A program made the translations under genes and the position numbers. The notes below the pieces were generated by a model. That model was not told where the DNA came from. It did no database searches and saw only the letters and a list, made by a program, of their open reading frames with translations. Positions 47,719-64,000 of a stretch of DNA of 64,000 nucleotides are shown one piece after another; positions within the stretch are counted from its first letter, which is position 1; each line of letters opens with the position of its first letter. Source of the DNA: Pocillopora damicornis (taxonomy: Eukaryota); NCBI RefSeq assembly GCF_003704095.1, contig NW_020845861.1:372001-436000 (forward strand). Direction: 5' to 3'.

Positions 47719-48671
47719 CGTTATTTATTATCCAATTGCTTCATTCTATCTTTCTTTTCTAAGCAAGCGTAGCCAACCTGTCAATCAGGTGTTTTTTTAA
47801 CGTTAAAGATAACCACCTTTATTGTAGCGCAGCGCCATGATTGGTCAAATTTCTCTGATCGAACTTTCGCCTAATGCCAGATAGATGTGCACCGCTGAGT
47901 TTTGATAATATTCATCTCGAAGTGCTATCCTTTTTAGTACGTTTGAGGGTCTTACATAAGAGAGAGAAAGAAAAGTTGTTTTATTTTATGTACCATCCCG
48001 CTGAAGCTCTTGAGCTCGTTTTTAGTATACGAGGTCCTCATTATCCCAATCTTGGGCCTTTAAAATTAATGTGTGGCACGTCTTTCAGAATTCGATCATA
48101 CAAAGATTGATTTTCTTGAAGGTTTCGTGCGCTGTTATCACGCGGCATCTATACCTTAATGAAATTTATATCTTCATTCCGTTTCTTATCATCCAATCAG
48201 GATAAATGAGGGCGAAGCGGGAGGAGAAAAAAAAAAAAGACGAGAGAGGGTTTTTATCTTTGCATGTGCGTCACTTTCGCCTTGCCAAAGCTTCCCTAGT
48301 TTGTCATAAAGGAAAATTTTGTGACCCAGGCTTTTAGTAAATAAAATTATTATTTCTACTTGGTTCAGTATTTCCCAATTCTTATCAAGATAACTATTTC
48401 AAAATAGTTAAAACTCTCCCTATCATCGCAAACAATGAGTATTGACAGTCGAACGAGTATAAGAATAGAATATCAGTCTAACTTGAAAAACGATTTTTTC
48501 ATCATTTATCAATTTTTTTAGGTTAGCTCTTTATTTAAGGTTAAAAAAACAAGGTAAAAAACTTTCACTACATTTTTAAGTGTCGAAATTTTCATTAAAT
48601 TTTGAAGATACTTCAAATTATCAAATTCACGCCGTTATTTTACGCGACTGCTGAATATTATGATTACAGTT

Positions 48672-51600
48672 CTAGATGGTCAATAACTTCAGAGCAAACA
48701 CAGCCTCTACCATGTTATAAAACGCTTTCAAATCAGAGTAATCACAAAATTCCAAGTTGTACACGTGGCGACTTGTCGCAATCGAAGCAATGTGCCCAAG
48801 GTTTCCACTTTCATAACCTCCAACTCTTCTTTTTCGCCAGGTATACTTCAGGGCACTGGAGACGAGCCTTCCTGGCTGTACCATGCTAAGCTCTGAAACA
48901 TTGATTTTCATTTTAAGAGATTTTTGGTGCGCTCATGAATTTAAGAATAGGAAAAAGAATATATCCCATGATTCTTTATGTCTGCCTTACAAGAGATGCT
49001 TGCAATTGAGTTGTGAAAGTAAATGTTTGTTTTAAAAAACAGACGCATATTCCATACGTGAATACCCTCAAAGCAGAGGTATCACAACCATCCCCTACAG
49101 TTTTTTCAAGTTTCTCTTAGAGAATAAAGGTACTCTTTGTTTGGGTGAAGGGCGACAGAATGAGGGTCAAGTGGGTCGGTGACTGTTAAGTGTCTTGTTA
49201 GAAGCAAAAATTAAACAACCTGACCTGATACTTCACTTGAGAGCATTTGGAAAACAGAAAATAGAGGATCAAGCGGAGGGACTTTAACTTCCACATGAAC
49301 TTATTTCTATGGTAATTATTCCATTTTCAAATCAGCTATCCCAGGATGACTTAAATTGATCATATTCATTGAGGCAATTGAATTCTTCCCGGGAGACTCA
49401 TACGTCCAGATCCTAAACTTATTTAATTTTGGAGGGATTAGACCTGTATTAGGGATTGGAGTTCATAGCTTGATCCCCTTTTGACTAAGAAGCATGTTTC
49501 CTATCTTGGGGAACTGGTCCCAAGAAAAAAATGTTCACAAAAAACGAAAAGATTGATAAAGTTGCGCAGGGTAAAAACGTATAGTTACCTTTCAAATCGA
49601 TGATCTTTTTAGCTTTCTCGTTTTGAATCACTTCTCCTTCGCCAGATTTTGATCTCAACTCAAGTTTGTGGGAATCTTCATGAAAAAATAGGTCTCCGTA
49701 ATGCGGCATTTTGTTTCCTAATACAACAGAAAGGTGTTAATTAAGCATTAGATTCAGACAGGATACCTCTATCTATCATCTGAAAAGCTACATTGAGGCA
49801 GATCTCCAACATTTTCAGGCCTTCAAAACCTAGACCATAGAGGTCATAATGGCAATGAAAAGAGGGGAAATTTGCATGGAGTCAGTGATAACTCAGGGTA
49901 AACAATGGGAAAAGGCGAGTGACAAAGTCTCTACAGTTTTCAGAATGATTTTCTAGAAGAGTAATGGAACCACCGAAAATCCAGCATGCCTTTAGACAAT
50001 GATTGTATTTGAGAGAAGAAAAAGAAACTATGCTTCTTCAATAAAAGTACAGGCGTTTTTCAAATCACCTTTCTTCGAGTGGAGGAACACGCCTACACCA
50101 CCGGAAAGTTTCCCCACGGCGCGTCTTTGGTTGAACGTTCTTGGAGGTGTAGGGAATTCTGGGAACAACATGCGGTAGGTGAAGGCCAGGGCTGTTGCTA
50201 GGATACCCCCTGTTACTTGGGCTTGTGGTAACTCACTTAAGGAATAATGATCACCAGGACAAACGAGTACTGTGGTACCTCCATCTACCAACTCGCTCCA
50301 GACTTCCTCGATGCCGTGTGACGTGGGATTACGGGGCAAAAATCTGCTGTTCTGGCATTTGAGGAAAGTGAGGGGACCTCGATAGCGAACCTATTGAATA
50401 TAAGGAATGCAAAAATGCAAATAAAGTTATTCTCCAATCATAATCATCTTTCTAATAAATTTATGATGTCCAATGGCTTGATACTCTTCTCGTTATGTAA
50501 ATTAAATTTGGACAACCTACTTCCTTACTGTAAGGATATTCGTTATTCCTTACCTCTGCAGGCTGCCATTCTTGGTGCGTCCTATTGGCAATGGTTTGAT
50601 TCCTCAGAAGAGCGTCTCTTAGAGTCCTTAAATCGTAGGTAGTAAGACCTTTAGTAAGACTTCTTTTCTGTAACTCATCAACGGTCCAGTCTTGACTGTG
50701 TGTCTCTCTCATTTGTCGATATTCGTCAACGGACATCTTTAAGGAGTCTACTGCAAGCTTTTCCAAATAGCTTTCGAATTGGAGCTGAATAGAGATAAAA
50801 AGAAATCTGTTAATTTTCTAATGGAAGTAAAATACTCGTCATGGATCAAATGTAAAGCTACAAAACAGCTGTAGACCAATTGGAACGGTTAGTTATCAAG
50901 TCAATCAGGACAGATCTCTAAAAGCAAAGGAGATATTCTTTCTCCTTTACCTCCCTTTGGGTTCGTAAATCAATGATCCAATGATTTCCACTAGGTTAAA
51001 CCCATGCATTAAAACTATGATTCATAAAGAAGTGTCCTCACGAGCCAAAGTTATTGGAAAAATCACCCCAAAAATCACCCAATGAGGTATACGTAATAAA
51101 ATATGTGTACAACACATAACGGAAAAAATCTCAAAAATGACTTATTTGTATTTCGAGATTTTAATTCAAAATGCGAAATTTTTACTTATTCTAATGACAA
51201 TAATTCGATGATATATATTGAATATGAATAATTTTGACTCGTCGAACAAACCTGAACATGTTGCGATGGCAGCCATCCGTCTTTCTTCATGGAAAATAAC
51301 CTGGTGGTTATGGTCCGTGAACGCGGTGACCAAGGAAAGGTGTCAATCATAGCAACGAACTCCACCCTGTGATCCTGTTCGGTCAGTAGGGAAGCCATTT
51401 CGTACGCCAAAAGTCCTCCATAGGAATATCCCCCGAGAAAATAGGGTCCATGGCGCTGTTCTTTGACGATTAGCTGAACGTAGTGAGCGGCAAGCTCACG
51501 TACTCCACCCCAGTCCTCACTAATGACCGTAGGGTCAGTAAAGCCCAGAGCATAAAAGGATACTAAGTCCTAATAATACATGATAAATGAAAAAATGCGA

Positions 51601-54600
51601 GTCACAAGATGAGATTTTCGAAAATTATGAAGTAAACATTCATTTTTTGAGGTTAGGCGGAAGTGCAACCAGCCTAACACCCCTTAGTGATATATTCGGG
51701 GGGACCAAAGGAGGAACCTCCACGGGACAAAAATTGTAAAATCTCTTAAGATTTGGGACGGAAAGCGACCTCGAGTGCGTATCGTTACTCCGCCATCTCC
51801 GCCATGAGATGTAGGTTACCATGAAACTGTAACAAAGACAGCAGAATATTCCTTAGCCATAGATCCAAATTAATGTAAGACGATTGATCATAAATAATAT
51901 CCAAATGATTATCGCATCACTGACCGCTAAAAAAGGGCTAAAAAATGTCAATACTTCTCAGGTATGTACCTGTCCTTGAAATCCGGTAGAAATGGGAACC
52001 AAATTCAACGCGTAGCGATGTGAAGGGTGCACACAGAAGAACTTTATTGCTGATCCCTCAGGAGTGTAAAGGGGTAAAACTTGGACCTCATTCTTGGAGG
52101 GTACCACTGAAGCATTTATATCCTCCGTTGACTGAGTTTGGTCGGGTTCATTTCCTTGGCTCTCGCTATTCTGTGGGCTGACTGATTTTCCACGAAGCCT
52201 GTCATAGATGTCATTGGCCATTTTTAGTGTGGTAGTGTCGGGCTGCATAAAGTAGAACACCTGAAACAAAATGTTTTAATTGTTTCAAGTTTAACATACA
52301 CGGGTAGATTTATCTGCATAAAAGATCGAATTGAACTCACTGCAATAAGCTGCTTGAATAGACCATAACTATTTTCTATACATGATGATTAAAGTAGCCT
52401 TTGAAAGGAAGAAACTCATGTGCAAGTTTGTCAAAGAACTTTTCAAAATAAGAAGCTTTCAGGAAAATTGGGAGCGTTTTCATTGACTGTGAATGTAAGG
52501 ATAAGAAATTACGTATGCGGACTTACGCGACTCTCTTATATCTATCATAGGAGGAAATTAGAATCCAGTTTTTTTTATTCATCTTATGAAATACCCACCT
52601 CAAAAGATACCTGCAAGTTCGATTCAAGCAGCATTTTCAAAGTCAAAGCTGCAGTTGAGTCAATACCGTAGCTATACAAGCTTTTGTTTAGATCCGTCTC
52701 TGAAGAAGATGAACTGCCTGTCAATTCCGCAACTGACATGCGAACATACTCAAGAATAAGTTCCCTTTTCTTTTCGGGATCCTTCTCTAAGCGATTTTTT
52801 TGCAGTAAAGACTCTGCTGTATTAGTTTGGCTATCAGAACCACTGGTTTCTGTAGTAATCATTGCGAGTCGGGAAGTCTTCTGTAGTCCGGTATTACTTT
52901 TGATAAATCGAGGCCAGTCCACACCAAATAACGAGATCTGCGGGCGACTCGGCTCCTCGGTTAAGACCTTGGCCATAAGTTTGACTCCTGCAAAATTAAT
53001 CAAAAAATTGGTCACGAGAACTACAAGATGAACAAAATTGCTCTGGTGCTACTGTAAATAGTATAATAGAGGAAAAGGCAAGATTTCGCGGAAGAAAAAT
53101 TCCAGTGAATCGCTCGGTAAATAAAGTTATCTACTGATGGTAAGTCCTTTCCTGTCGGTATCACCACCAAAGCTTGCAAAGAAGCTGATTTGTTCTTATC
53201 GGCTCACCCTCCAGCATGAAGATCAGTGAGCTTACATATCCCATCACACACATTACACGTAGTCGTGCTCATTTTCATTTGTTTTGACTATTCTAGGCTC
53301 ATTTTGTTCTGTTTCTAGCATATTACAATTTGATCATGTTACTGAAATAACATTTTACCATCTTTGGCATTTATGAAGCCCAGTCCGCCTACTGCCATCA
53401 ATTTTGTAAGAGCACTCTGCCGTTCCATCACGCCAGCTCCACTTATTGGTCCCCAGTTTATCGAAAGTCCGGGTAGACTGAGCACTCGTCTTCGATACTG
53501 GGCAAGAGAATCTTGGAAGGCATTGCAGGCGGAGTATGATGATTGACCCATGTTTCCTACGATGGATGCCATGGATGAGAACATAACGAAGAAATCAAGA
53601 TCCATCTTCAAGCTCATTTGGTGTAGCAAGTAGGAACCTAAAGAAAACGTAGCACACTGATGATCTTGATTTAATTCATAGCTTGGCTATGACATGAACA
53701 GCGTTACCCTGATGATATTTCTACACAGCAACAATTCAAACAAATGAATTTAAGTAACTTTACAAACTCGAAAGTGATAATGTTGTTTAAGTGTCTTTAA
53801 TTTGCATTTTTACAGACAAGCTAATTTCGGATTCTCGTCTAGATTGATTTACTTATGTTAAACGGGTTTGTTTGTGAGGGTTAGGTGCACTTGCCTTTTA
53901 ATTACGTTTGTTTCATATATTTACTGAAGGTGAAATAGAAAACAAACACAGAAAAGAAGGTAAAGTAGTATTACTTGAGGTGTCAGACCTGTTGTAAGGT
54001 GTTAATCAATATATTCTTGGGTCGAAAGAAATGGTTTAAGGATAATAAAGTATGATAGCAGGCATGACATGCACCTTTAATCTTAGGATCCATGACATCT
54101 GTGAAACTTCTAAATGACCAATCTTTGATAAATTCATCTCTGAGAACCATGGCAGTATGTACTATTCCAGCCACACTTGGAATAGAGTCTAGCTGCTCTT
54201 TTAATGACTGCATTTGCTCTTGGCTGGATATGTCAATCTATAGCAACAAAAAAGAAAACTGTGAAATCCATGAGATAAAATGTGCTTTACTTTCTGGACA
54301 TCACACAACGTGAGCTTATATAGCATTTCTTATAAGGGAAATGTAATCGTAAAAATGTTGCAGCAAGTGAAAATTTACTATGGCAAACATGCCATAAATT
54401 ACCTGGAAAATATGAAACTTTGCGCCTGTCTTGGTCTCAATACCTCGTACTTCTTGATACTCGGCATCTGAGGGCTTGGAACGACCAATCAGTCNNNNNN
54501 NNNNNNNNNNNNNNNNNNNNNNNNNNNNNNNNNNNNNNNNNNNNNNNNNNNNNNNNNNNNNNNNNNNNNNNNNNNNNNNNNNNNNNNNNNNNNNAATCAA

Positions 54601-57600
54601 GATCCATCTTCAAGCTCATTTGGTGTAGCAAATAGGAACCTAAACAAAATGTATCACACTGATGATCTTGATTTAATTCATAGTTTAGCTATGATATGAA
54701 CATCGTTACTGTGATGATATTTCTACACAGCAACAATTCAAATAAATGAATTTAAGTAACTTTACAAACTCGAAAGTGATAAAGTTTAAGTGTCTTAGCA
54801 TTTCTAAAGACACGCTAATTTCGGATTCTCATCTAGATCGATTCACTTATGTTAAAAGAGTTTCATTGTGAGGGTTAAGTGCACTTGCCCTTTAATTACG
54901 TTTTTTTTATATATTTACTAAAGGTTAAATAGAAAACAAACACAGGAAAGAAGGTGAAGTAGTATTACTTGAGGTGTCAGACCTGTTGTAAGGTGTTAAT
55001 CAATGTATTCTTGGGTCGAAAGAAATGGTTCAAGGATAATAAAGTATTATAGCAGGCATGACATGCACCTTTAATCTTAGGATCCATGACATCTGTGAAA
55101 CTTCTAAATGACCAATCTTTGATAAATTCATCTCTGAGAACCATGGCAGTATGTACTATTCCAGCCACACTTGGAAGAGAGTCAAGCTTCTCTTTTAGTG
55201 ACTGCATTTGCTCTTGGCTGGATAGGTCAATCTAGAGCAACAAAAAAGAAACTTTGAAATACATGGGATACGATGTGCTTTACTTTCTGGACATAACACA
55301 ACGTGAACCTATATAGAATTTATTATCAGGGGAATGCAATCATAAAAATGTTGCACCAAGAGAAAATTTACTATAACAAACATGCTACAACGAACCTGGA
55401 AAATATGAAACTTTGCGCTTGTCTTGGTCTCAGTACCTCGTACTTGTTGATACTCGGCATCTGAGGGCTTGGAACGACCAATCAGTCCAATAGACTTTGC
55501 TCCATTCTCGGCCATCCAACGTGCCACTTGAAATCCGTATCCTCTGATCCCGCCTGCCACCAAGTACGTTCTTTTTTCTTTCAGACCACACTCGTCTAGA
55601 CCGCGTGGAAGAACGGGGGTCTTTTGATAATCACCGCTTTCTTTAGATGGAGCAAATGAGTGAATCAGAAAAGAAATACTTTGAAATGTTCTCATGGAAT
55701 TTTTAAATGGTGAGTTGTCCACCGTGAAATCGTTTGTAGCTTCAATGGCCGTCGTTATGTCCATCCTTATCAATTTGATTTCTTGTGGCTTTTTCAAAAG
55801 TGGTCCACCTTTTANNNNNNNNNNNNNNNNNNNNNNNNNNNNNNNNNNNNNNNNNNNNNNNNNNNNNNNNNNNNNNNNNNNNNNNNNNNNNNNNNNNNNN
55901 NNNNNNNNNNNNNNCTTGGAACGACCAATCAGTCCAATAGACTTTGCTCCATTCTCGGCCATCCAACGCGCCACTTCAAATCCGTATCCTCTGATCCCCC
56001 CTGCCACCAAATACGTTTTGTTTTCTTTCAGACCACACTCGTCTAGACCGCGTGGAAGAACGGGGATCTTTTGACGATCACTGCATTCTTTAGATGGAGC
56101 AAATGAATGAATCAGAAAAGAAATACTTTGAAATACTCTCATGGAAGTTTTCGATGGTGAGTTGTTTACAGTGAAATCGTTTGTAGCTTCAATGGCCGTC
56201 GGTATGTCCATCGATACCAATTTGATTTCTTGTAGCTTTTCCAGGAGTGGTCCACCTTTTAGCAGCTCTAGACTCTCTATACTGAGCTGTTGATAAGTTT
56301 GTGGTGTTAGGAGGATGTCTGAAATGCTTTCTCTCACATACATAACATTTTTCTTCGCAGGGAAGACGACGTCTCCATCAAATTCGGCTCCCAAGATAAC
56401 AACTTTTCCTCCGCGTTTGAGATTTCGACTGCTTTTTTGGAGAGCGTTCGGAGGGGGTGGGTAGAAAAACAAAACTGCATCAAAGGCGTGTCTGGAGTCA
56501 TCTTCAAATTTGGCGAGGCTCTGATTTGTAACATTCTCAGCTCCCAGCTCTAGGAGGGTAGATTTTGTTACGGATTGACAAGTGTCAGACACAGTGCAAA
56601 ATACTTTGTGACCCATTGCTTTCGCAAGGGCAACTGCTGCAGGTCCAGGGCCACGGTGAGCTTGATGTATAAGTAATCTCATATTTTCTTTCTTTGTTGC
56701 TGTGCGTTTTAGTGCATGCAAAGCTATGGCTAGGCAGGCAGGGATGTATGTTGCTTGTTCCTGTGTCAAAATGGCTGGCTTCACAAACGTGTTGGTGACT
56801 TGTATGGGAAGGGAACGAGAAACGCGCCCAGAGGCTGTAACGCCGCACACAACGTCTCCTATTTGCATCTGATTATTTGCGGTCTCTCCTGATAGGTGAG
56901 TGACCTCTCCAACGGTGAAAACACAGGCATTTGGTTTGGATACATCAAGAATTGATTCCGAAGGTGTCCAGCAATAAAGCAGTTCTATTGTGACCTCGGA
57001 GGGCGATGGTTTTGAAAAGCTCTTCTGGCGAAGGCAGACTTTCCTTGTACCGGGGATAGACGATAAGTACAAAGAACCCCAGTCGCTTTCATTACTGTGT
57101 GGTGTGGGTTGCTCTATGGATATGTTTGATCTCACAACATGATTTATGAACCGCTTTCCATCTCGAAAGGCGACCTCCTCTTCAATGCTATCGCCAAGTA
57201 TTTCCGAAAGCAACAAGTCCACCTCAGTAATGTCATTCTTGTTGCCAAGATCAATGGTTGTGATACCCAGATCAAATTCTTCGAGTTTCGCTGTTCGTCG
57301 AAGTCCCCAGATAGTAGACGCCCAAGGAATGGAATTGACTTGAGACTCAGTTGTGGTATTTAGGAACTGTGTACTTTCAGAGACGAGTAACAGTCGAGAA
57401 TCAAGCATTCCCTTGCTTACGAGCTGTTGGATCAAGAAGACTGAGCTGCTGAAGGCGAGGTTTTGTGCTTTTTCAATAACATCAAATTTGTTTGGTAGGA
57501 GATTTGTCTCTACTGGCCACATGTTGACGACTTTGAGGAAGGATAAATTGCCTGAGGGTACACCAGTTAACGCTGAACTGATTACGTCTTCCGTTTTGGT

Positions 57601-60600
57601 GTCAAAAGATAGAGCATTGGGTGGATCAACTGTGATTACGTTGACTTTTGCGGTGCGAAGTTTTCCGATTAAGGTGTCTGATAAAGGAGAGCTGTCCCTT
57701 AGAAGAAGACAGGTCAAGTTTGGCGAAATTTCTCTTTGTGTCTGTAACTTATCTTCAATCCACTGCACTTCATAGACAAGGTCATCAGAGGGAAATCGTC
57801 GTGGTGTGCTATTTAATTCTGCAACACGGAATTCCCTCATGGTCAGTAGAATTTTTCCAGATGGACTGGTAAGCGTGACGTCGAATTTTCCGAACTCTTT
57901 GACATCCCCAATAACGTGACAATAAAGTTGATTGGTATTTGGAAGGTCATTCAAAGTGATACCTTCAAATCCCACCGGTACAACAGACTTCTCGTCAATA
58001 GCTGAAGATCCAAGAGGAATGAAGCAGGATTGAAGACAAGCGTCTAAAATGGAAGGGTGAACCACATAATTTTCAATTTCTGATTGAACCATGAGTGATT
58101 CACGGATATCGATCAGGCAAAGCCCCTCGTTATCACGGTACCAGGTCTGTTTAATGATGGAGTAAGCACCACCGTACTGAAAGCCGTACTTTTGTGTTAT
58201 TTCTCTGAATCGTTCAATCGGCATCTCTGTCATACTTCTGATCAGGTCATTAACAGCTGGTCCAACTTGATTGCAGGCTGTTAGAATCAAAATGATGGAG
58301 AGATGTATTTTTTTAACTTCTATTTAAGAGTTATTGTCTCTTAGAATTGTTACGGTCACAGCATCTTTTCCAAGAAAAATGCGTCATTAACTTGAACATT
58401 TTTTATCAAATTTTAAGCGATAAATTTTTTAAATTTTTAAACAAATGGATAGATAAATCGATATATAACGAATCGAGAATCTTGCAAGCGTTAAATGTTT
58501 TGGTACCTTCTTCCTCGAAGTTTCTTCTTGTGTGCAAGAGATCTACGGAGATGTTTCCACCACTTAACATAATTTCAGACTGGTCTTCCTGTACGCTCGT
58601 GATCTGGAACTGAGCGTTATCAATTATTTCGGTCCTTAAAAGGCGAAGACGTAAGGATCTAACCTAAAGTGCAAAGGACGAAGAAGTCAGATAAAGTCGA
58701 CTTAGCTCCTTAGCTTGCCTCTAATTAATTTGCACACATAATTATTACCTGTGTTTCAGGAAGAGTGAGAAGACTTGAAAGCTTCACATCACTTAGTTCC
58801 AGGCCAGAGGTATGAACGAATTTATCCTTTACCATTGCAAAGGCCATCTCCAAGTAAGCAGCTCCAGGCATCACAGCACCCCCCTCGCTTAGGGCGTGAT
58901 CCTTCAGGGATGGAAAGTTGAAAAGATCAATCTCAGTTTCCCAGCAGTGTAGGCCTGAATATAAGTCGGTCATTTTGACTTGTGCTAGATAGGGATGTGT
59001 TGGCTTCTTAATGGTTTCTTTAGAGTCAATTGGGTGTACTATCGCTTGTGGTGGGTGTTCCCTGTACCAAAAGCTGCTTTCCACCCATGGAGATTCTGGT
59101 AGCCGGATGAACCTCGCTGATTGGCTCCCCTGCACAGAAGTCCAGTCAACAGGAAATCCCATTGTATACAATTTGCACACCGTGTTCTGAATAAAGTATC
59201 TGTGCTGGTCCTCGATGGGCACTCTCTTACGAGGAAGAGTTGCAATGACAACAGGCCTTTCTTCTTCCGTCAGATCTTCCTGAAGAGCTATCTGTTTCAC
59301 GTAATGGGAAAGAATTGGCTGCGTACTGATCTCAATTATCTGTTTGTAACCATCCCGTAGTAGGTGTTTCATCGCTGAATAGAACCGAACAGGACAGCGT
59401 ATATTTTGCCACCAGTAATTGCTGTTTAATTGCTGACCCGAGACAACTTCACCTTTAACCGTAGAGTACATCGGAATTTTTGATAACTGAGGGTTAAATT
59501 TCACACTTTTCATAGCTTCCTGAAATGGTTTTTTGATCGGCTCCATGTGAGAGCTGTGAAATGCACGATTCGTTCCAAGAACGCGCCAGAAAACATCTTT
59601 TGCATTCAACGATAGATGTTGCCCAAGTGCCTCGATGGATTGCGAATCACCAGCAACTGTGACACTTTTTGCATCATTGACCGCTGCTATGTCGAGGGTG
59701 GCGCTTAACCTTAGATCAAAAAGTAACTCCCTGGCCTTTAATTCTGAGATTCCCAGGGCAGCCATACCTCCATTGTTCGGGCATCTATCTTGAAGATTGG
59801 CGCGAGTTAATACCAGCTGAACTGCTTCCTTGACAGTAATGATACCAGCAACACAGGCAGCTGCAAACTCTCCTAAACTGTGACCAATAACAGCAGAAGG
59901 ATGGACTTTCCAGGACTTAAGGAGCTGTGCAGTTGCGTACTGAACAGCAAAAGTGGCTGGCTGGGCAATGTAGCTTTCTGTTATTCGTGAAACGTCTTCT
60001 GGTGCCATCAATTCGTCCTCGAGTGACCATGTTTCTCCCAAGTCTTTAAGAAAGCTGCTGACTGTTAAAATAGCATCTCTGAAAACAGTTTCAAATTCCA
60101 TTAACTGCCTTCCCATGGCATACCATTGTGACCCTTGACCCCCAAACATGAAAACGACTTTTCTAACACTCGAAGTCACCTCGGCATAAGAAGCCAACTT
60201 TTCCCAACCAACGGAGTTAACAGCGAAAGCTTCCAATGACTTGGATGCTTCGAGAGCGGTTCCAAAGGCAAGAGCTAGGCGATGCGGATATTGGCTTCGA
60301 CGTTCGTTTAAGGAATAGCACAAGTCTTGCGCAAAGTGTTCATCCGTTTCATCAGCCTTGTTTTTAATCCACGCGGAGTAAAGCTCTGACATCTTCTTAA
60401 GACCCTCTAGAGAACGAGCTGTAATGGTGAGGACATTGTTCTTGCGTATATAGTTTTGACCTTCAAAACTTGGCGTCGGTGTAGCTTCACGAAGAATGGC
60501 ATGCACATTTGACCCACCATAGCCGAATGAGTTTACGGCTGCTATTCGCGGCTTGCCATTTTCTGTGTTCCAAGCCTCTCGAATTTGTTGCAATATAAGT

Positions 60601-63600
60601 CCTTTTTCTTCTAGCTTTAGTTTGGGATTCAACACCTTGACGTTGATAGTTGGTACAAACGTCTTGTTTCTTATCATCAGAGCGGTCTTAATAAGCCCAG
60701 CAAGTCCAGAAGTAGATTCCGTGTGATTGAGATTAGATTTTACAGAGCCAATCCTCAATTTTCGTGAAGAAGTTGCGCCCTGGTTAGAGTAAGTATCTGC
60801 TATAGAGTTGACTTCCACCACATCACCAATTGCAGTACCAGTCCCATGTGCCTCGAAGTAATCCACGTCTTCTGCGGTCACTCCTGACTGCTCAAGTACT
60901 CTTCTTGATAACTCAGCTTGCATCTTGGCACTTGGAGCAGTGATGGGCACGGCATTTTGACCATCGTTGTTCATTCCACATGCAACGATCTCGCAATAAA
61001 CATCGTCTTTGTCACACAGAGCATCTTTTGTCAACTTTAACACAACCGCTGCGAAGCCCTCCCCGCGTCCATAACCGTCCCCAGAAGCATCAAAACTTTT
61101 GCAACGGCCGTCTGGCGCGAGAAGTCCGGCCATACTAGTTACCATCTGCATGGAATGATCAAGGACGACATTGGGTGCACAAACGATGGCTATATCGCAA
61201 TCATCGTGATGGAGATTGTCACAGGCTAGTTTAAGGGCAGTTAGCGATGAAGAACAGGCTGTATCCACAGCAATACTTGGTCCTGTTAGATTTAGGCAAA
61301 ATGACACTCTGTTGGCAAGAATAGACGCCGTTATCCCCGTTGAAGAATACTGATTAATGTTGCTGTAATTAGACCGGTCTGTTGTGAGAGCGCCGTACTC
61401 AAGGTTCATCACACCAACAAAAACACCTGTTCTACACTTTTGTAAATCTTCAAGCCGCATTCCTGCATCTTCGATTGCCTCGTAGACTACTTGAAGGAGT
61501 ATTCTTTGCTGAGGGTCCATCGCGCGTGCCTCTTGATTGGAGATACCGAAGAACCTGTTGTCAAAAGTTTGTATTTCTTCCAAGTAGGAACCATTGATGG
61601 CACAAAGGCGTCCATTAACGAAGCGCTTAGGATTGTAGAGCTCAAAAAACGCTTTATGCTCCTGTGTTCGATTATCGGGAAACGGACGGATGGAACTCTT
61701 TCCTTCCTCAAGCAAAACCCAAAAAAGGTCCTTACAGTTGGCGCCGGGGAATCTACAACTGATGCCAATGATAGAGATCTGGGGACGTTTAGCCTTGAGC
61801 TTTGTTATGTCACCATTCCGTGCCTCAAGTAACATTGAGTCATATGCTTCCAGGTAATGTTCCACTAACTCCTCGCTATCCTTAGAATTAAAATAGTGAA
61901 CTAACTCCTCAAACAATACAAGGAACGTGGGAACGACAATCAGAGCATGGATTGACCCTAGAGCGAAGACCAGAGGAAGTAGTAGAAAGAAAATATCTGA
62001 CAGACTGGGAAATATAAATCCTAAGGAGATAGATGCTAATATGGATGAAATTGTGCCTGCTAGCACGGATACTCCAACAGAGCGTAGACCGTCGATCATG
62101 CGATCTTGTATACCCTTCTTAGCTGAGAGTACGTACGAATAACCCACTTCAATACTAGAATTCAAAGAAAGGATAATCGTCAAGTAAAGAGAAATGAAAG
62201 ACACAGGATCGAGATAAATTCCAAACGTGTTCATAATTGCAGCTGCTTCCAGTACTAGGACGTCGAATGCTAAAGTCAGGATTGTACTAACACCTAGATG
62301 ACACGTCGCAAATAGAGAAACTGTAAACACCACCACTGTGCCAACTGCGAGGACTATGGAGATTGTTTCTTCTTCTAACTTGACGAGGTCGTCAACAGCG
62401 AAAAACTTTTCGGAGACTGGAATAGCTTTCAGGAAAGAATATTCTTGTAAATCGCCCCTCAGTTTCCTCAGGGATTTTCTATCGTCTTGAAATCGGTTTT
62501 TAAGAGTCATTCTGAGATGAATTCGAGACGCCGATATTTTGACAAGGGATATAGAATCTTTTAGAAGCAAGTCTTGTCTAAACGGCAAACTTTGGGAATT
62601 GTTCAGGAAAATCTCAAAGCATCGGTAGAATTCTGAGTACCGACAATTCATGTTTTGATGTTTAACCCATTGTCGGAAGTCTTCCGTCCAACAAAGCGAC
62701 CTTCCTTTACTGTAAGGGGCCTCTTGCAGTTTTTCACACAGTGATACTACTTGATTTTGCACACTTTTTAGCGGGTAGTCAATGTCCTCGGAGAAAACGA
62801 TGCTTACATCAGTTTCGTTGCTAAAGAAAATTTGTCGTGCCTTATCGAATTGCTTGAAGTTTTCATTCTGGTAGTATGAGTCTATGGTACGTGCCCTCTC
62901 TCCAGTTTGAAATGCAGACAAAACACACAAAATAATGAGTAGGGCGAAGATACCAAGGGAGATAATTTTGCCGCCAGTTGATGTTATTTTACGAGCTAAC
63001 GTCTTCAGAATCCGTTGCAGTTTTGTTTTATGGTAAAGTGAGTGTCTTAGTTCAAAGCTGCCAGCTTCAACGTTCGACAACCTTCTTTCACATGCTGCCG
63101 CACAAGGAGTATTTATGGTCTTAAGCTTCCTTTCAAAATACAGCAACACAATGACTGTGATTGTCAAATTAGAAGCAGAAACAGCTAGATGAGCGGCAAG
63201 TGTTGCAAAGAAGAAATGGGAAATTCCCCTGAACGAGGATTTCACTGCCACTCCACAAAGAATTGACCCACAAAGCGCAGTTGCGGTGGCGAGGACCCCT
63301 GTTCTAGCCAGGCAATTGCCAACGCGATGTTCAAGTGATGGCACCATTTGATGCCTTTCCCATTCAACGAGGAAAAGTACCACGTCTGTAATTACTTTCC
63401 CCAACAAAAAGAATGGTATGAACAGTGAAGTTGAGGTAAAGGCAAAGTTCGTCATCGAGACAAAACCTGCAGAACACGTTAATGGTAACACAAAGCATGA
63501 GAATAAGAGGAGGACCGTCCTTAAACAAACGGCATTGGCAGAAGAAAAGTGTATTACAATGAATGCAAGGGCAGCTATCGCAAAAACTGTAACACAAAGA

Positions 63601-64000
63601 GGCCATAGCTCTGGTTTGAGGACGTCTTGCAAGGCCTTGGTTGTTGCTCTCCCAGTCTTGTAGGAAAGTTCTGCACATTTCAAGCGAGGACTGACTGATG
63701 TGAGGAGATTGCTAAACGTGACTTCAAAATCCTCGATTTTTTGGTACTCTTCTGGACTGGTTGTCTTTCTTACGAAGTAAATAGCCTGAAGAGCGTCGGC
63801 ATGAGCCGTTAATCGATCTCTGTTCCGCTCTAGGTAGAAATTGGCCAGCATTTGACGATAGGAATGTTTAAATGTTTGGCCAGAGGAAAGAACAGTAGTA
63901 GGCTTTACCGACTCGCGAGCCAGAATAGAGGAGAGATTTTTCAGATTTTGAAAATTAGTTCCAGCTAACTCAAGAGGACTGCTAATCATGCAATTTTTTT
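48672..64000 (-). CDS. Membrane-anchored iterative type I PKS: Patched/NPC1-like TM domain-KS-AT-DH-ER(degenerate)-KR-ACP-TE-PH-like; 5' end outside the window. Exons: >64000-58749, 58663-58507, 58277-55915 joined to 54474-54403, 54237-54075, 53637-53359, 52987-52599, 52260-51970, 51569-51252, 50784-50554, 50390-50069, 49717-49589, 48892-48672
   Basis: KS motifs DTACSSS, EAHGTGT and KSNLNH; AT motifs GQGSQW, GHSLGE and RAFHS; DH motifs DHALSEGGAVMPG and HPSILDACLQ; KR motifs GGIRGYG, VLRD and SSMAS...QSSYSACN; ACP GIDS; TE GYSYG, IDT and GDHY. Eleven hydrophobic helices lie upstream of the KS in the same ORF. All inferred introns are GT-AG with consistent phases. Confidence 0.9.
54595..55814 (-). 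repeat. Diverged second copy of the PKS ER-end/KR segment (exons and introns), placed between two 100-N gaps
   Basis: Duplicates 56261-55915 and 54494-53595. The flanks of the two gaps overlap by an identical 20-mer (55915-55934 = 54475-54494). Confidence 0.85.

Follow-up and report, generated by a model that had tools for sequence, protein, structure and literature searches.

The usual picture of a megasynthase is that of a soluble assembly line with a release domain at its end. Among animal polyketide synthases (PKSs), the closest described relatives in layout of the gene discussed here are three PKS genes of Acropora digitifera, which a Pfam-based survey recorded as 'other-KS-AT-DH-KR-ACP-TE', that is, an unnamed region followed by ketosynthase (KS), acyltransferase (AT), dehydratase (DH), ketoreductase (KR), acyl carrier protein (ACP) and thioesterase (TE) domains (Hojo et al. 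2015, PMC4604110). Sea urchin Pks2 (KS-AT-DH-KR-ACP-TE) and a fish otolith PKS (KS-AT-DH-KR-ACP) have been linked to calcium carbonate biomineralisation (PMC4604110). Here we describe the C-terminal end of a PKS gene of the coral Pocillopora damicornis that lies on the minus strand of a 64,000-nucleotide stretch of genomic DNA, hereafter the window (NCBI RefSeq assembly GCF_003704095.1, contig NW_020845861.1, positions 372,001 to 436,000 of the forward strand). Behind the thioesterase, two further exons complete a module of about 140 residues that very probably folds as a pleckstrin homology (PH) domain of the type found in phospholipase C (PLC).

The A. digitifera PKSs have the same domain order as the gene in the window, and their unnamed N-terminal 'other' region fits the NPC1/Patched-like membrane region that precedes the KS domain here. 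The genomic arrangement is also similar. In A. digitifera, one gene stands alone and two share a scaffold; in P. damicornis, one gene is on the window's contig (C2496), and a second contig (C3843) carries two intact copies and a decayed one. The likeness is one of layout. However, the A. digitifera genes are given as ending at the TE, and no PH-like module and no enoyl reductase (ER) were reported for them (PMC4604110). Sea urchin Pks2 and the fish otolith PKS, which we compared by description, are likewise iterative animal PKSs, but their listed architectures include neither a membrane region nor any domain behind the TE or ACP. A full-text literature search for a PKS with a PH domain, with incomplete coverage, found no such paper, so that a PH tail after the TE can be called an ending not described for such PKSs only provisionally. 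The gene family itself is known. What is new is a domain architecture built from known parts.

The first-pass annotation of the window had proposed that three extra exon segments append a PH-like domain to the thioesterase. The spliced module is real, but only two of its exons are new: because the PH domain already begins within the last TE exon, some 25 codons before its end, the first of the three pieces is the end of that exon. The junctions that had been placed at 50069/49717 and 49589/48892, with GT-AG ends and in phase 1, are exact in every coordinate on the minus strand, and the peptide that had been joined across them agrees, in a comparison by eye, with the three exon translations and the split Gly and Glu codons.

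All features of the module are on the minus strand. The PH-like domain opens with an N-terminal helix and strand beta1, both encoded at 50069..50144, the last 25 codons of the final TE exon, and this part has a conserved 3' end that consists of HSKK and a split Gly. Intron 1 (49718..50068; 351 nt, GT..AG, phase 1) is followed by extra exon 2 (49589..49717; 129 nt), which encodes strands beta2 to beta4 and a variable beta3/beta4 loop. Intron 2 (48893..49588; 696 nt, GT..AG, phase 1) leads to the coding part of the terminal exon, exon 3 (48672..48892), with strand beta5, a beta5/beta6 insertion that contains a short helix and the sequence WRKRR, strands beta6 and beta7, the C-terminal helix and a TAG stop codon at 48674-48672. 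The donor of intron 1 is AAAG/GTGATT at 50069/50068 and its acceptor is ..TTGTATTAG/GAAAC at 49718/49717; the donor of intron 2 is TTGAAAG/GTAACT at 49589/49588 and its acceptor is ..TGTTTCAG/AGCTT at 48893/48892. Each intron falls after the first base of a codon, and the two interrupted codons encode G (Gly) and E (Glu). The module of about 140 residues thus consists of the last 25 codons of the TE exon and two further exons.

Both junctions are supported by RNA. We mapped RNA contigs from four runs (X1, X2, X5 and X6, from studies P1-P4) to positions 47800-53500; the runs are labelled coral metagenome, and two of the four are recorded as RNA-Seq. The joint 48892 to 49589, which skips 696 nt, and the joint 49716 to 50068 (cut at +1), which skips 351 nt, are each present in contigs of 4/4 runs, from four studies, as the first-pass annotation had led us to look for. 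Both read CT..AC on the plus strand, which is GT..AG on the strand of the gene. Contigs of 9146 nt (X2), 7617 nt (X5) and 1023 nt (X6) carry exon 49589-49716 in one continuous sequence with the TE exons, which are joined as 50068-50388, 50552-50784 and 51252-51568, and the two long contigs (9146 and 7617 nt) extend to the ACP exon at 52596-52986. Since these are contigs, they show presence and junctions, not single molecules or expression levels.

Other processed forms are minor. The first-pass annotation had named read-through of the donor at 50068, with a stop at 50028, as an outcome that would overturn its proposal. Retention of intron 1, which would give that stop, was found in one contig at a word depth of 4.7, versus 238 for the spliced form in the same run. 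Intron 2 is present in low-depth retained pieces, and a minor alternative joint, 48892 to 49225, occurs only in X5. Downstream of the stop codon, the 3' untranslated region (UTR; 47800..48671, minus strand) is covered by one contig per run that is unbroken over 47800-48894; these contigs are 1553-1736 nt long and overrun 47800, so that the UTR continues for about 460-640 nt more and is well over 1 kb in total. The contig that holds the terminal exon and the 3' UTR is deeper than the body of the PKS in X2 (201 vs 49) and X5 (86 vs 42) and not in X1. The excess depth could come from the 3' bias of oligo-dT libraries, from an extra isoform or from an overlapping transcript of the opposite strand.

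The structure of the tail is conserved among corals. Exon 3, used as the query of a word search, has 27 close homologues that are 72-94% identical to it. All 27 are exon fragments called on genomic contigs, and their similarity ends exactly at the splice acceptor. Two other coral genomes, L001 and L002, keep the exon order of the window, with exons 2 and 3 behind the final TE exon, and their phases and GT..AG sites are identical to those in the window. In L002, exon 2 equals that of the window in length, at 42 full codons, and is 60% identical to it; in L001, 41 of the 42 codons can be aligned, at 54% identity. Exon 3 needs no gaps in either genome. The lengths of intron 1 and intron 2 are 351 and 696 nt in the window versus 945 and 344 nt in L001 and 1822 and 500 nt in L002. 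The ratio of nonsynonymous to synonymous substitution rates (dN/dS) for the module is about 0.15 at dS above 1, where the Nei-Gojobori estimate is saturated, with 0.18 for exon 2 and 0.12-0.17 for exon 3. The module is under purifying selection, and its exon structure and conservation are far beyond what chance would give. The peptide that would be read past the TE donor is not conserved and stops after 4-5 codons in L001 and L002.

Spliced sequences from other corals show the same ending. A scan of metagenome contigs found 33 loci, four of which are spliced contigs of cDNA type from other corals: L012, L029 and L030 have the TE, exon 2 and exon 3 in one open frame, and L021 has exon 2 joined to exon 3. 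An additional spliced form, P0052, reads from the TE through exon 2 to exon 3. In the open reading frames (ORFs) of L029 and L030, the thioesterase family PF00975 lies upstream of the module, and the TE extends to the exon that corresponds to 50145..50390. A HMMER search of 1.84 billion cluster representatives found 21 proteins, including members of a divergent lineage; these were only short exon 3 fragments on genomic contigs, with no long PKS protein, and the joined reading frame is instead seen in metatranscriptome contigs. Because there are only 21 representatives among 1.84 billion, the family is small.

The divergent lineage is 26-45% identical in exon 3 and was found in metagenome and Logan contigs (L003, L004, L043-L046, P0040, P0042, P0048, P0049, P0057, P0058 and P0060). 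The position of the intron before exon 3 is unchanged in it, and distant versions of exon 2 are present in L043, L044, L004 and L045. All three genomic pieces are found in L043 and L044, in which the TE exon ends in FLHSKK/G and FLHSRK/G, respectively, and the ending FLHS[KR][KR]G is conserved across L001, L002, L043 and L044. In P0058, a spliced member of this lineage, exon 2 is joined to exon 3, and P0038 has a thioesterase exon 6.5 kb upstream. Wherever the flanking DNA or cDNA is long enough, the module follows a PKS thioesterase exon.

We predicted the fold of the tail with AlphaFold2 (AF2), using as input the tail of a natural spliced homologue (L030:2029-2448) and a 36-row alignment, A7, which was checked by eye and includes distant exon pieces and spliced forms. 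MAFFT alignments A2, A3 and A6 misplaced short exon pieces and were left out of folding. Compared with the window, the L030 tail shows 62% identity over exon 2 and 72% over exon 3 in a gap-free alignment. The best model (md841a096816b) has a pLDDT of 81.5 and a pTM of 0.78, and the five models range from 76 to 81.5 in pLDDT. It consists of a helix (residues 3-14), strands at 16-21, 30-37, 42-47, 59-65 and 69-74, a short helix at 79-85, strands at 102-107 and 111-116, and a final helix at 119-133. The helix 3-14 and the strand 16-21 fall in the part encoded by the TE exon, and everything from the strand 69-74 through the helix 119-133 falls in exon 3. In the homologue, then, the model is a seven-stranded antiparallel beta-sandwich closed by a C-terminal helix.

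Structure searches with this model found PH domains. The top Foldseek matches in the PDB are all PH or PH-like (ISP1, PLC-gamma1, PLC-delta1, ISP3 and ELMO1), with a best E-value of 3.4e-4 (ISP1) and TM-scores of 0.5-0.69. In VIA-align, the highest scores belong to PLC-gamma2 (Z 14.2; rmsd 2.4 A over 117 residues) and PLC-gamma1 (Z 13.1-14.0), followed by PLC-delta1 (Z 12.3), ISP1 (Z 11.9), PLC-epsilon (Z 11.1-11.3) and PLC-beta (Z 10.3-11.1). An unbiased scan of 48,161 representative PDB chains returned the same order, and its top 50 matches all have the PH superfold. In the alignments with PLC-gamma and PLC-delta1, 112-121 residues are matched at Z 12.3-14.2, versus about 9-10 for ordinary PH domains, and the match starts at model residue 1-4. 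The helix encoded by the TE exon is thus part of the PH domain. An extra N-terminal helix and a helix between beta5 and beta6 are the marks of PH domains of the PLC-delta1 type, and both are present in the model (3-14 and 79-85). ESM-Atlas features, whether of exon 3 alone or of the homologue's module, matched PH_14, ISP3_C, PH and PH_12, all of the PH clan; with scores of 0.80-0.87, these matches serve as a lead only. The first-pass annotation had read a PH fold from the sequence, with seven strands and a closing helix, and had called it most like PLC-type PH domains. The homologue's model bears out the fold, and its nearest solved neighbours, the N-terminal PH domains of PLC-gamma1 and PLC-gamma2 (Z 13.1-14.2), bear out the likeness.

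Comparison with the nearest structures indicates what is shared and what is not. The N-terminal PH domains of PLC-gamma1, PLC-gamma2, PLC-delta1 and PLC-epsilon (PDB 8jqh, 6pbc, 7z3j, 1mai and 9b13) have the same fold in detail (Z 11.1-14.2, with 112-121 residues aligned at 2.2-3.6 A), including a basic open end of the sandwich. However, their sequence identity to the module is only 8-13%, and the module is without the basic beta2 residues and without the helix Trp. The module is at the C-terminus of a PKS, whereas these PH domains are at the N-terminus of a phospholipase; the likeness is one of fold and does not imply common descent. The Toxoplasma proteins ISP1 (Z 11.9) and ISP3 (Z 9.8) (PDB 4chm and 4chj; Pfam ISP1_C and ISP3_C) resemble the module in being PH folds that generic PH sequence models miss, and the ISP3_C cluster is the second ESM-Atlas match of the module. 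In contrast to the PKS tail, they are small, palmitoylated, cytoskeleton-associated proteins of an unrelated organism, and their identity to the module is 12-15%. Since the module is a PLC-type PH domain by fold and is matched by no PH sequence model, we file it as a new divergent PH-like family and not under PF00169 or PF17787. We have high confidence in the anatomy of the tail as spliced and, on the strength of the model, in its assignment as a PH fold of PLC type.

What the tail does is less certain. The module is basic in all lineages, with a pI of 9.7-10.2; homologues have 20-26 Lys and Arg residues versus 11-17 Asp and Glu, and the three pieces in the window have 23 and 13, respectively. 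In PLC-type PH domains, the end that faces the lipid is made up of the beta1/beta2 and beta3/beta4 loops. In the module, the motif HS[KR][KR]G at the end of beta1, at the beta1/beta2 loop, persists in distant relatives as well; a Lys or Arg is conserved at the end of beta3; and basic runs are common in the beta3/beta4 loop. Given this strong basicity and the conserved basic residues in loops that would face a membrane, a peripheral membrane anchor is the function that we consider most likely, although on the predicted structure we propose it tentatively, as nearly even in the balance. The PH tail would bind acidic lipid head groups on the cytosolic leaflet. The NPC1/Patched-like N-terminal region would leave the synthase on the cytosolic face, and the basic tail could therefore hold the ACP-TE end to the same membrane. 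The release end might thus be kept at the bilayer near the enzyme's own transporter-type region, and a lipophilic product could be released at or into the membrane. The first-pass annotation had suggested that a phosphoinositide- or protein-binding module gives the PKS a second contact with the membrane, beside the release domain; such a contact is plausible. Taken as a whole, a PKS whose PH tail serves as a peripheral membrane anchor is the best explanation of the data, and we regard it as moderately probable.

Several observations weigh against this explanation. Pfam has no match for the 140-residue module at E-values up to 10 nor for the exons of the window at E-values up to 1, and NCBIfam has no match to the module; a profile of the module found no PH domain among PDB sequences, and its only two matches there are due to chance (E-values of 0.24 and 1.2). 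The sequence that was folded is the homologue's, not that of the window. A first AF2 model, made with a shallower, 17-row alignment of close corals, had a pLDDT of 49.7; the structure searches used the second, 36-row model and not this one. The RNA evidence consists of contigs, none of which spans from the membrane region through to the stop codon. With respect to lipid binding, strand beta2 (consensus xFGxLFF) has no conserved basic residue, and as a result the canonical phosphoinositide site, K-Xn-[KR]-X-R, is incomplete. WRKRR is confined to the close coral group, with non-basic stretches at its place in distant relatives. The conserved Trp of the C-terminal helix is present in 0/22 inspected rows of A7, which have Phe, Tyr or Leu instead, as judged from the alignment and not from residue-by-residue structural equivalence. 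Lastly, the near structural neighbours include the presumed protein binders ISP1/3, PLC-beta and ELMO1.

This last point leads to the strongest alternative, that the tail binds protein. It could dock the acidic ACP, the TE, the enzyme's own membrane region, the second subunit of a dimer or a partner enzyme. The PH-like domains of ISP1/3, PLC-beta and ELMO1 are protein-binding rather than lipid-specific, and the closest folds to the module include ISP1 (Z 11.9), PLC-beta2/3 (Z 10.3-11.1) and ELMO1 (Z 9.8-10.5). The incomplete lipid-site motif is in keeping with such a role, and the ACP, being acidic, would be a fitting partner for a module with a net charge of about +9 to +12. Furthermore, the most invariant residues (LPG, one Lys, GN, YNxE and EA) are in exon 3, away from the beta1/beta2 loop, and could mark a docking surface. 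However, the nearest folds by a clear margin are the PH domains of PLC-gamma and PLC-delta1, which are lipid binders, and the basic residues of the module cluster in the loops that face the membrane in PLC PH domains. We consider protein docking a serious possibility, but a doubtful one.

In a second alternative, the lipophilic polyketide itself would be bound or covered by the module, which would serve beside the TE as a small carrier or a lid. Its position directly after the release domain would suit this, and there is a precedent for the fusion of a thioesterase with a lipid-binding domain. ACOT11 and ACOT12 combine a hotdog thioesterase with a START lipid-binding domain and so follow the same logic, a release domain and then a small module directed to lipid or membrane. 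This is an analogy only: the thioesterase is of the hotdog type in ACOT11/12 and an alpha/beta hydrolase in the PKS, and the appended domain is START in the one and PH in the other. The PH sandwich, moreover, is as a rule without a large hydrophobic cavity, and the model is a compact, basic domain. Binding of the product is therefore improbable.

It is also conceivable that exons 2 and 3 are a separate small gene, or come from a transcript with an internal promoter and a start at ATG 49709, and that the joint with the TE is minor or chimeric. A Met is the third codon of exon 2, and the terminal-exon contig is deeper than the PKS body in X2 (201 vs 49) and X5 (86 vs 42). But depth in contigs is not a reliable measure, and 3' ends are over-represented in oligo-dT libraries; the main PKS contigs carry the joint from the TE to exon 2 in 4/4 runs, and the TE and the module are in one ORF in spliced homologues. 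The Met is replaced by Asn in L002, by Trp in L029, L030 and L021, by Arg in L012 and by Gly in P0052, and is therefore not a conserved start. In addition, the fold begins in the TE exon, which supplies its N-terminal helix and strand beta1. The RNA joints, the lack of conservation of the Met and the location of beta1 effectively refute a separate gene, to which we assign very little probability. That the extra exons reflect non-functional noise in 3' splicing, with the protein really ending at 50028, as a short read-through ORF and a low-depth contig with a retained intron might suggest, is refuted by the RNA depth and by conservation (a dN/dS of about 0.15 at saturated dS, an exon structure kept in close and distant lineages along with a confident fold, and a read-through peptide that stops after 4-5 codons in L001 and L002), and we give it virtually no credence.

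The rest of the gene, also on the minus strand, is a type I iterative PKS with TE release, with KS, AT, DH, KR, ACP and TE in one gene, in a window with a GC content of 0.25-0.45 and GT..AG introns of a few hundred bases. The remainder of the last TE exon (50145..50390) is contained in the RNA contigs as 50068-50388, with a joint to 50552. The upstream exons 50552-50784, 51252-51568 and 51969-52257 and their introns (50552..52257) were placed by RNA joints. The first two encode the thioesterase domain; 51252-51568 carries the motif GYSYGG, and PF00975 matches the frame 51189-51569 with an E-value of 7.9e-16. Exon 51969-52257, between the ACP and TE exons, has no family match. The ACP (phosphopantetheine-binding) exon (52596..52986) was identified by PF00550 (E 4e-5) and by RNA joints.

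The body of the gene (55309..63989) encodes the NPC1/Patched-like membrane region and then, according to Pfam, KS-AT-DH-(ER)-KR. Pfam matches along the gene are ketoacyl-synt (4.2e-77), Acyl_transf_1 (4.5e-56), PS-DH, KR, PP-binding (4e-5) and Thioesterase (7.9e-16). A match to ADH_zinc_N, of the enoyl reductase type, is located between DH and KR in 55309-58290 (minus strand) with an E-value of 6e-7, just under the Pfam cut-off. The 736 residues before the KS (61782-63989, minus strand) match chains of NPC1, NPC1L1 and Patched with E-values of 5.5e-6 to 4e-3, and the matches cover both membrane bundles (residues 137-242 and 524-709); Pfam matches to SSD (sterol-sensing) and Patched in this region are just under their cut-offs. 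On the basis of the NPC1 and Patched matches, the PKS carries a transporter-like membrane head. Upstream of the ATG at 63989, no stop codon interrupts the frame before the window ends, and the 5' end of the gene may therefore be outside the window. Between 53342 and 55231 (minus strand) there are near-identical repeats of KR exons, with 55231-54980 resembling 54237-53986 and 54688-54440 resembling 53686-53342. Runs of N adjoin the repeats, which stem either from a duplication in the assembly or from exons that are truly repeated in tandem.

The genome of P. damicornis has three further copies of the module, all on contig C3843. Those at 80081-80308 and 122024-122248 are intact, and the decayed copy is between them at 113500-113689. 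Both intact copies have the same ending of ACP, TE, exon 2 and exon 3. The decayed copy also follows TE exons, but its exon 3 is split and carries a TAA. The intact copies are 68-74% identical in exon 3, which indicates that they are paralogues and not haplotigs. The module is thus found at the end of every intact paralogue in the genome.

Based on these results, we describe an animal PKS with a head that resembles a membrane transporter and a tail that, as modelled, is a PLC-type PH domain invisible to Pfam, and the finding adds a divergent family to those of PH type. Should the tail be an anchor directed to lipid, it would show a spatial coupling of product release to a membrane, and perhaps to export. 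We speculate, although we think it unlikely, that the enzyme is a make-and-export machine, in which the transporter head and the PH anchor would fasten the PKS at both ends to one membrane and the TE would pass the polyketide to the enzyme's own transporter. In that case, the lipid preference of the PH domain would set which membrane is used, for example one that faces the calcifying space, and this could provide a link to biomineralisation in corals. The tail of about 140 residues offers a small, expressible handle on the site of the enzyme in the coral cell, and thereby bears on the proposed link between animal PKSs and calcium carbonate biomineralisation.

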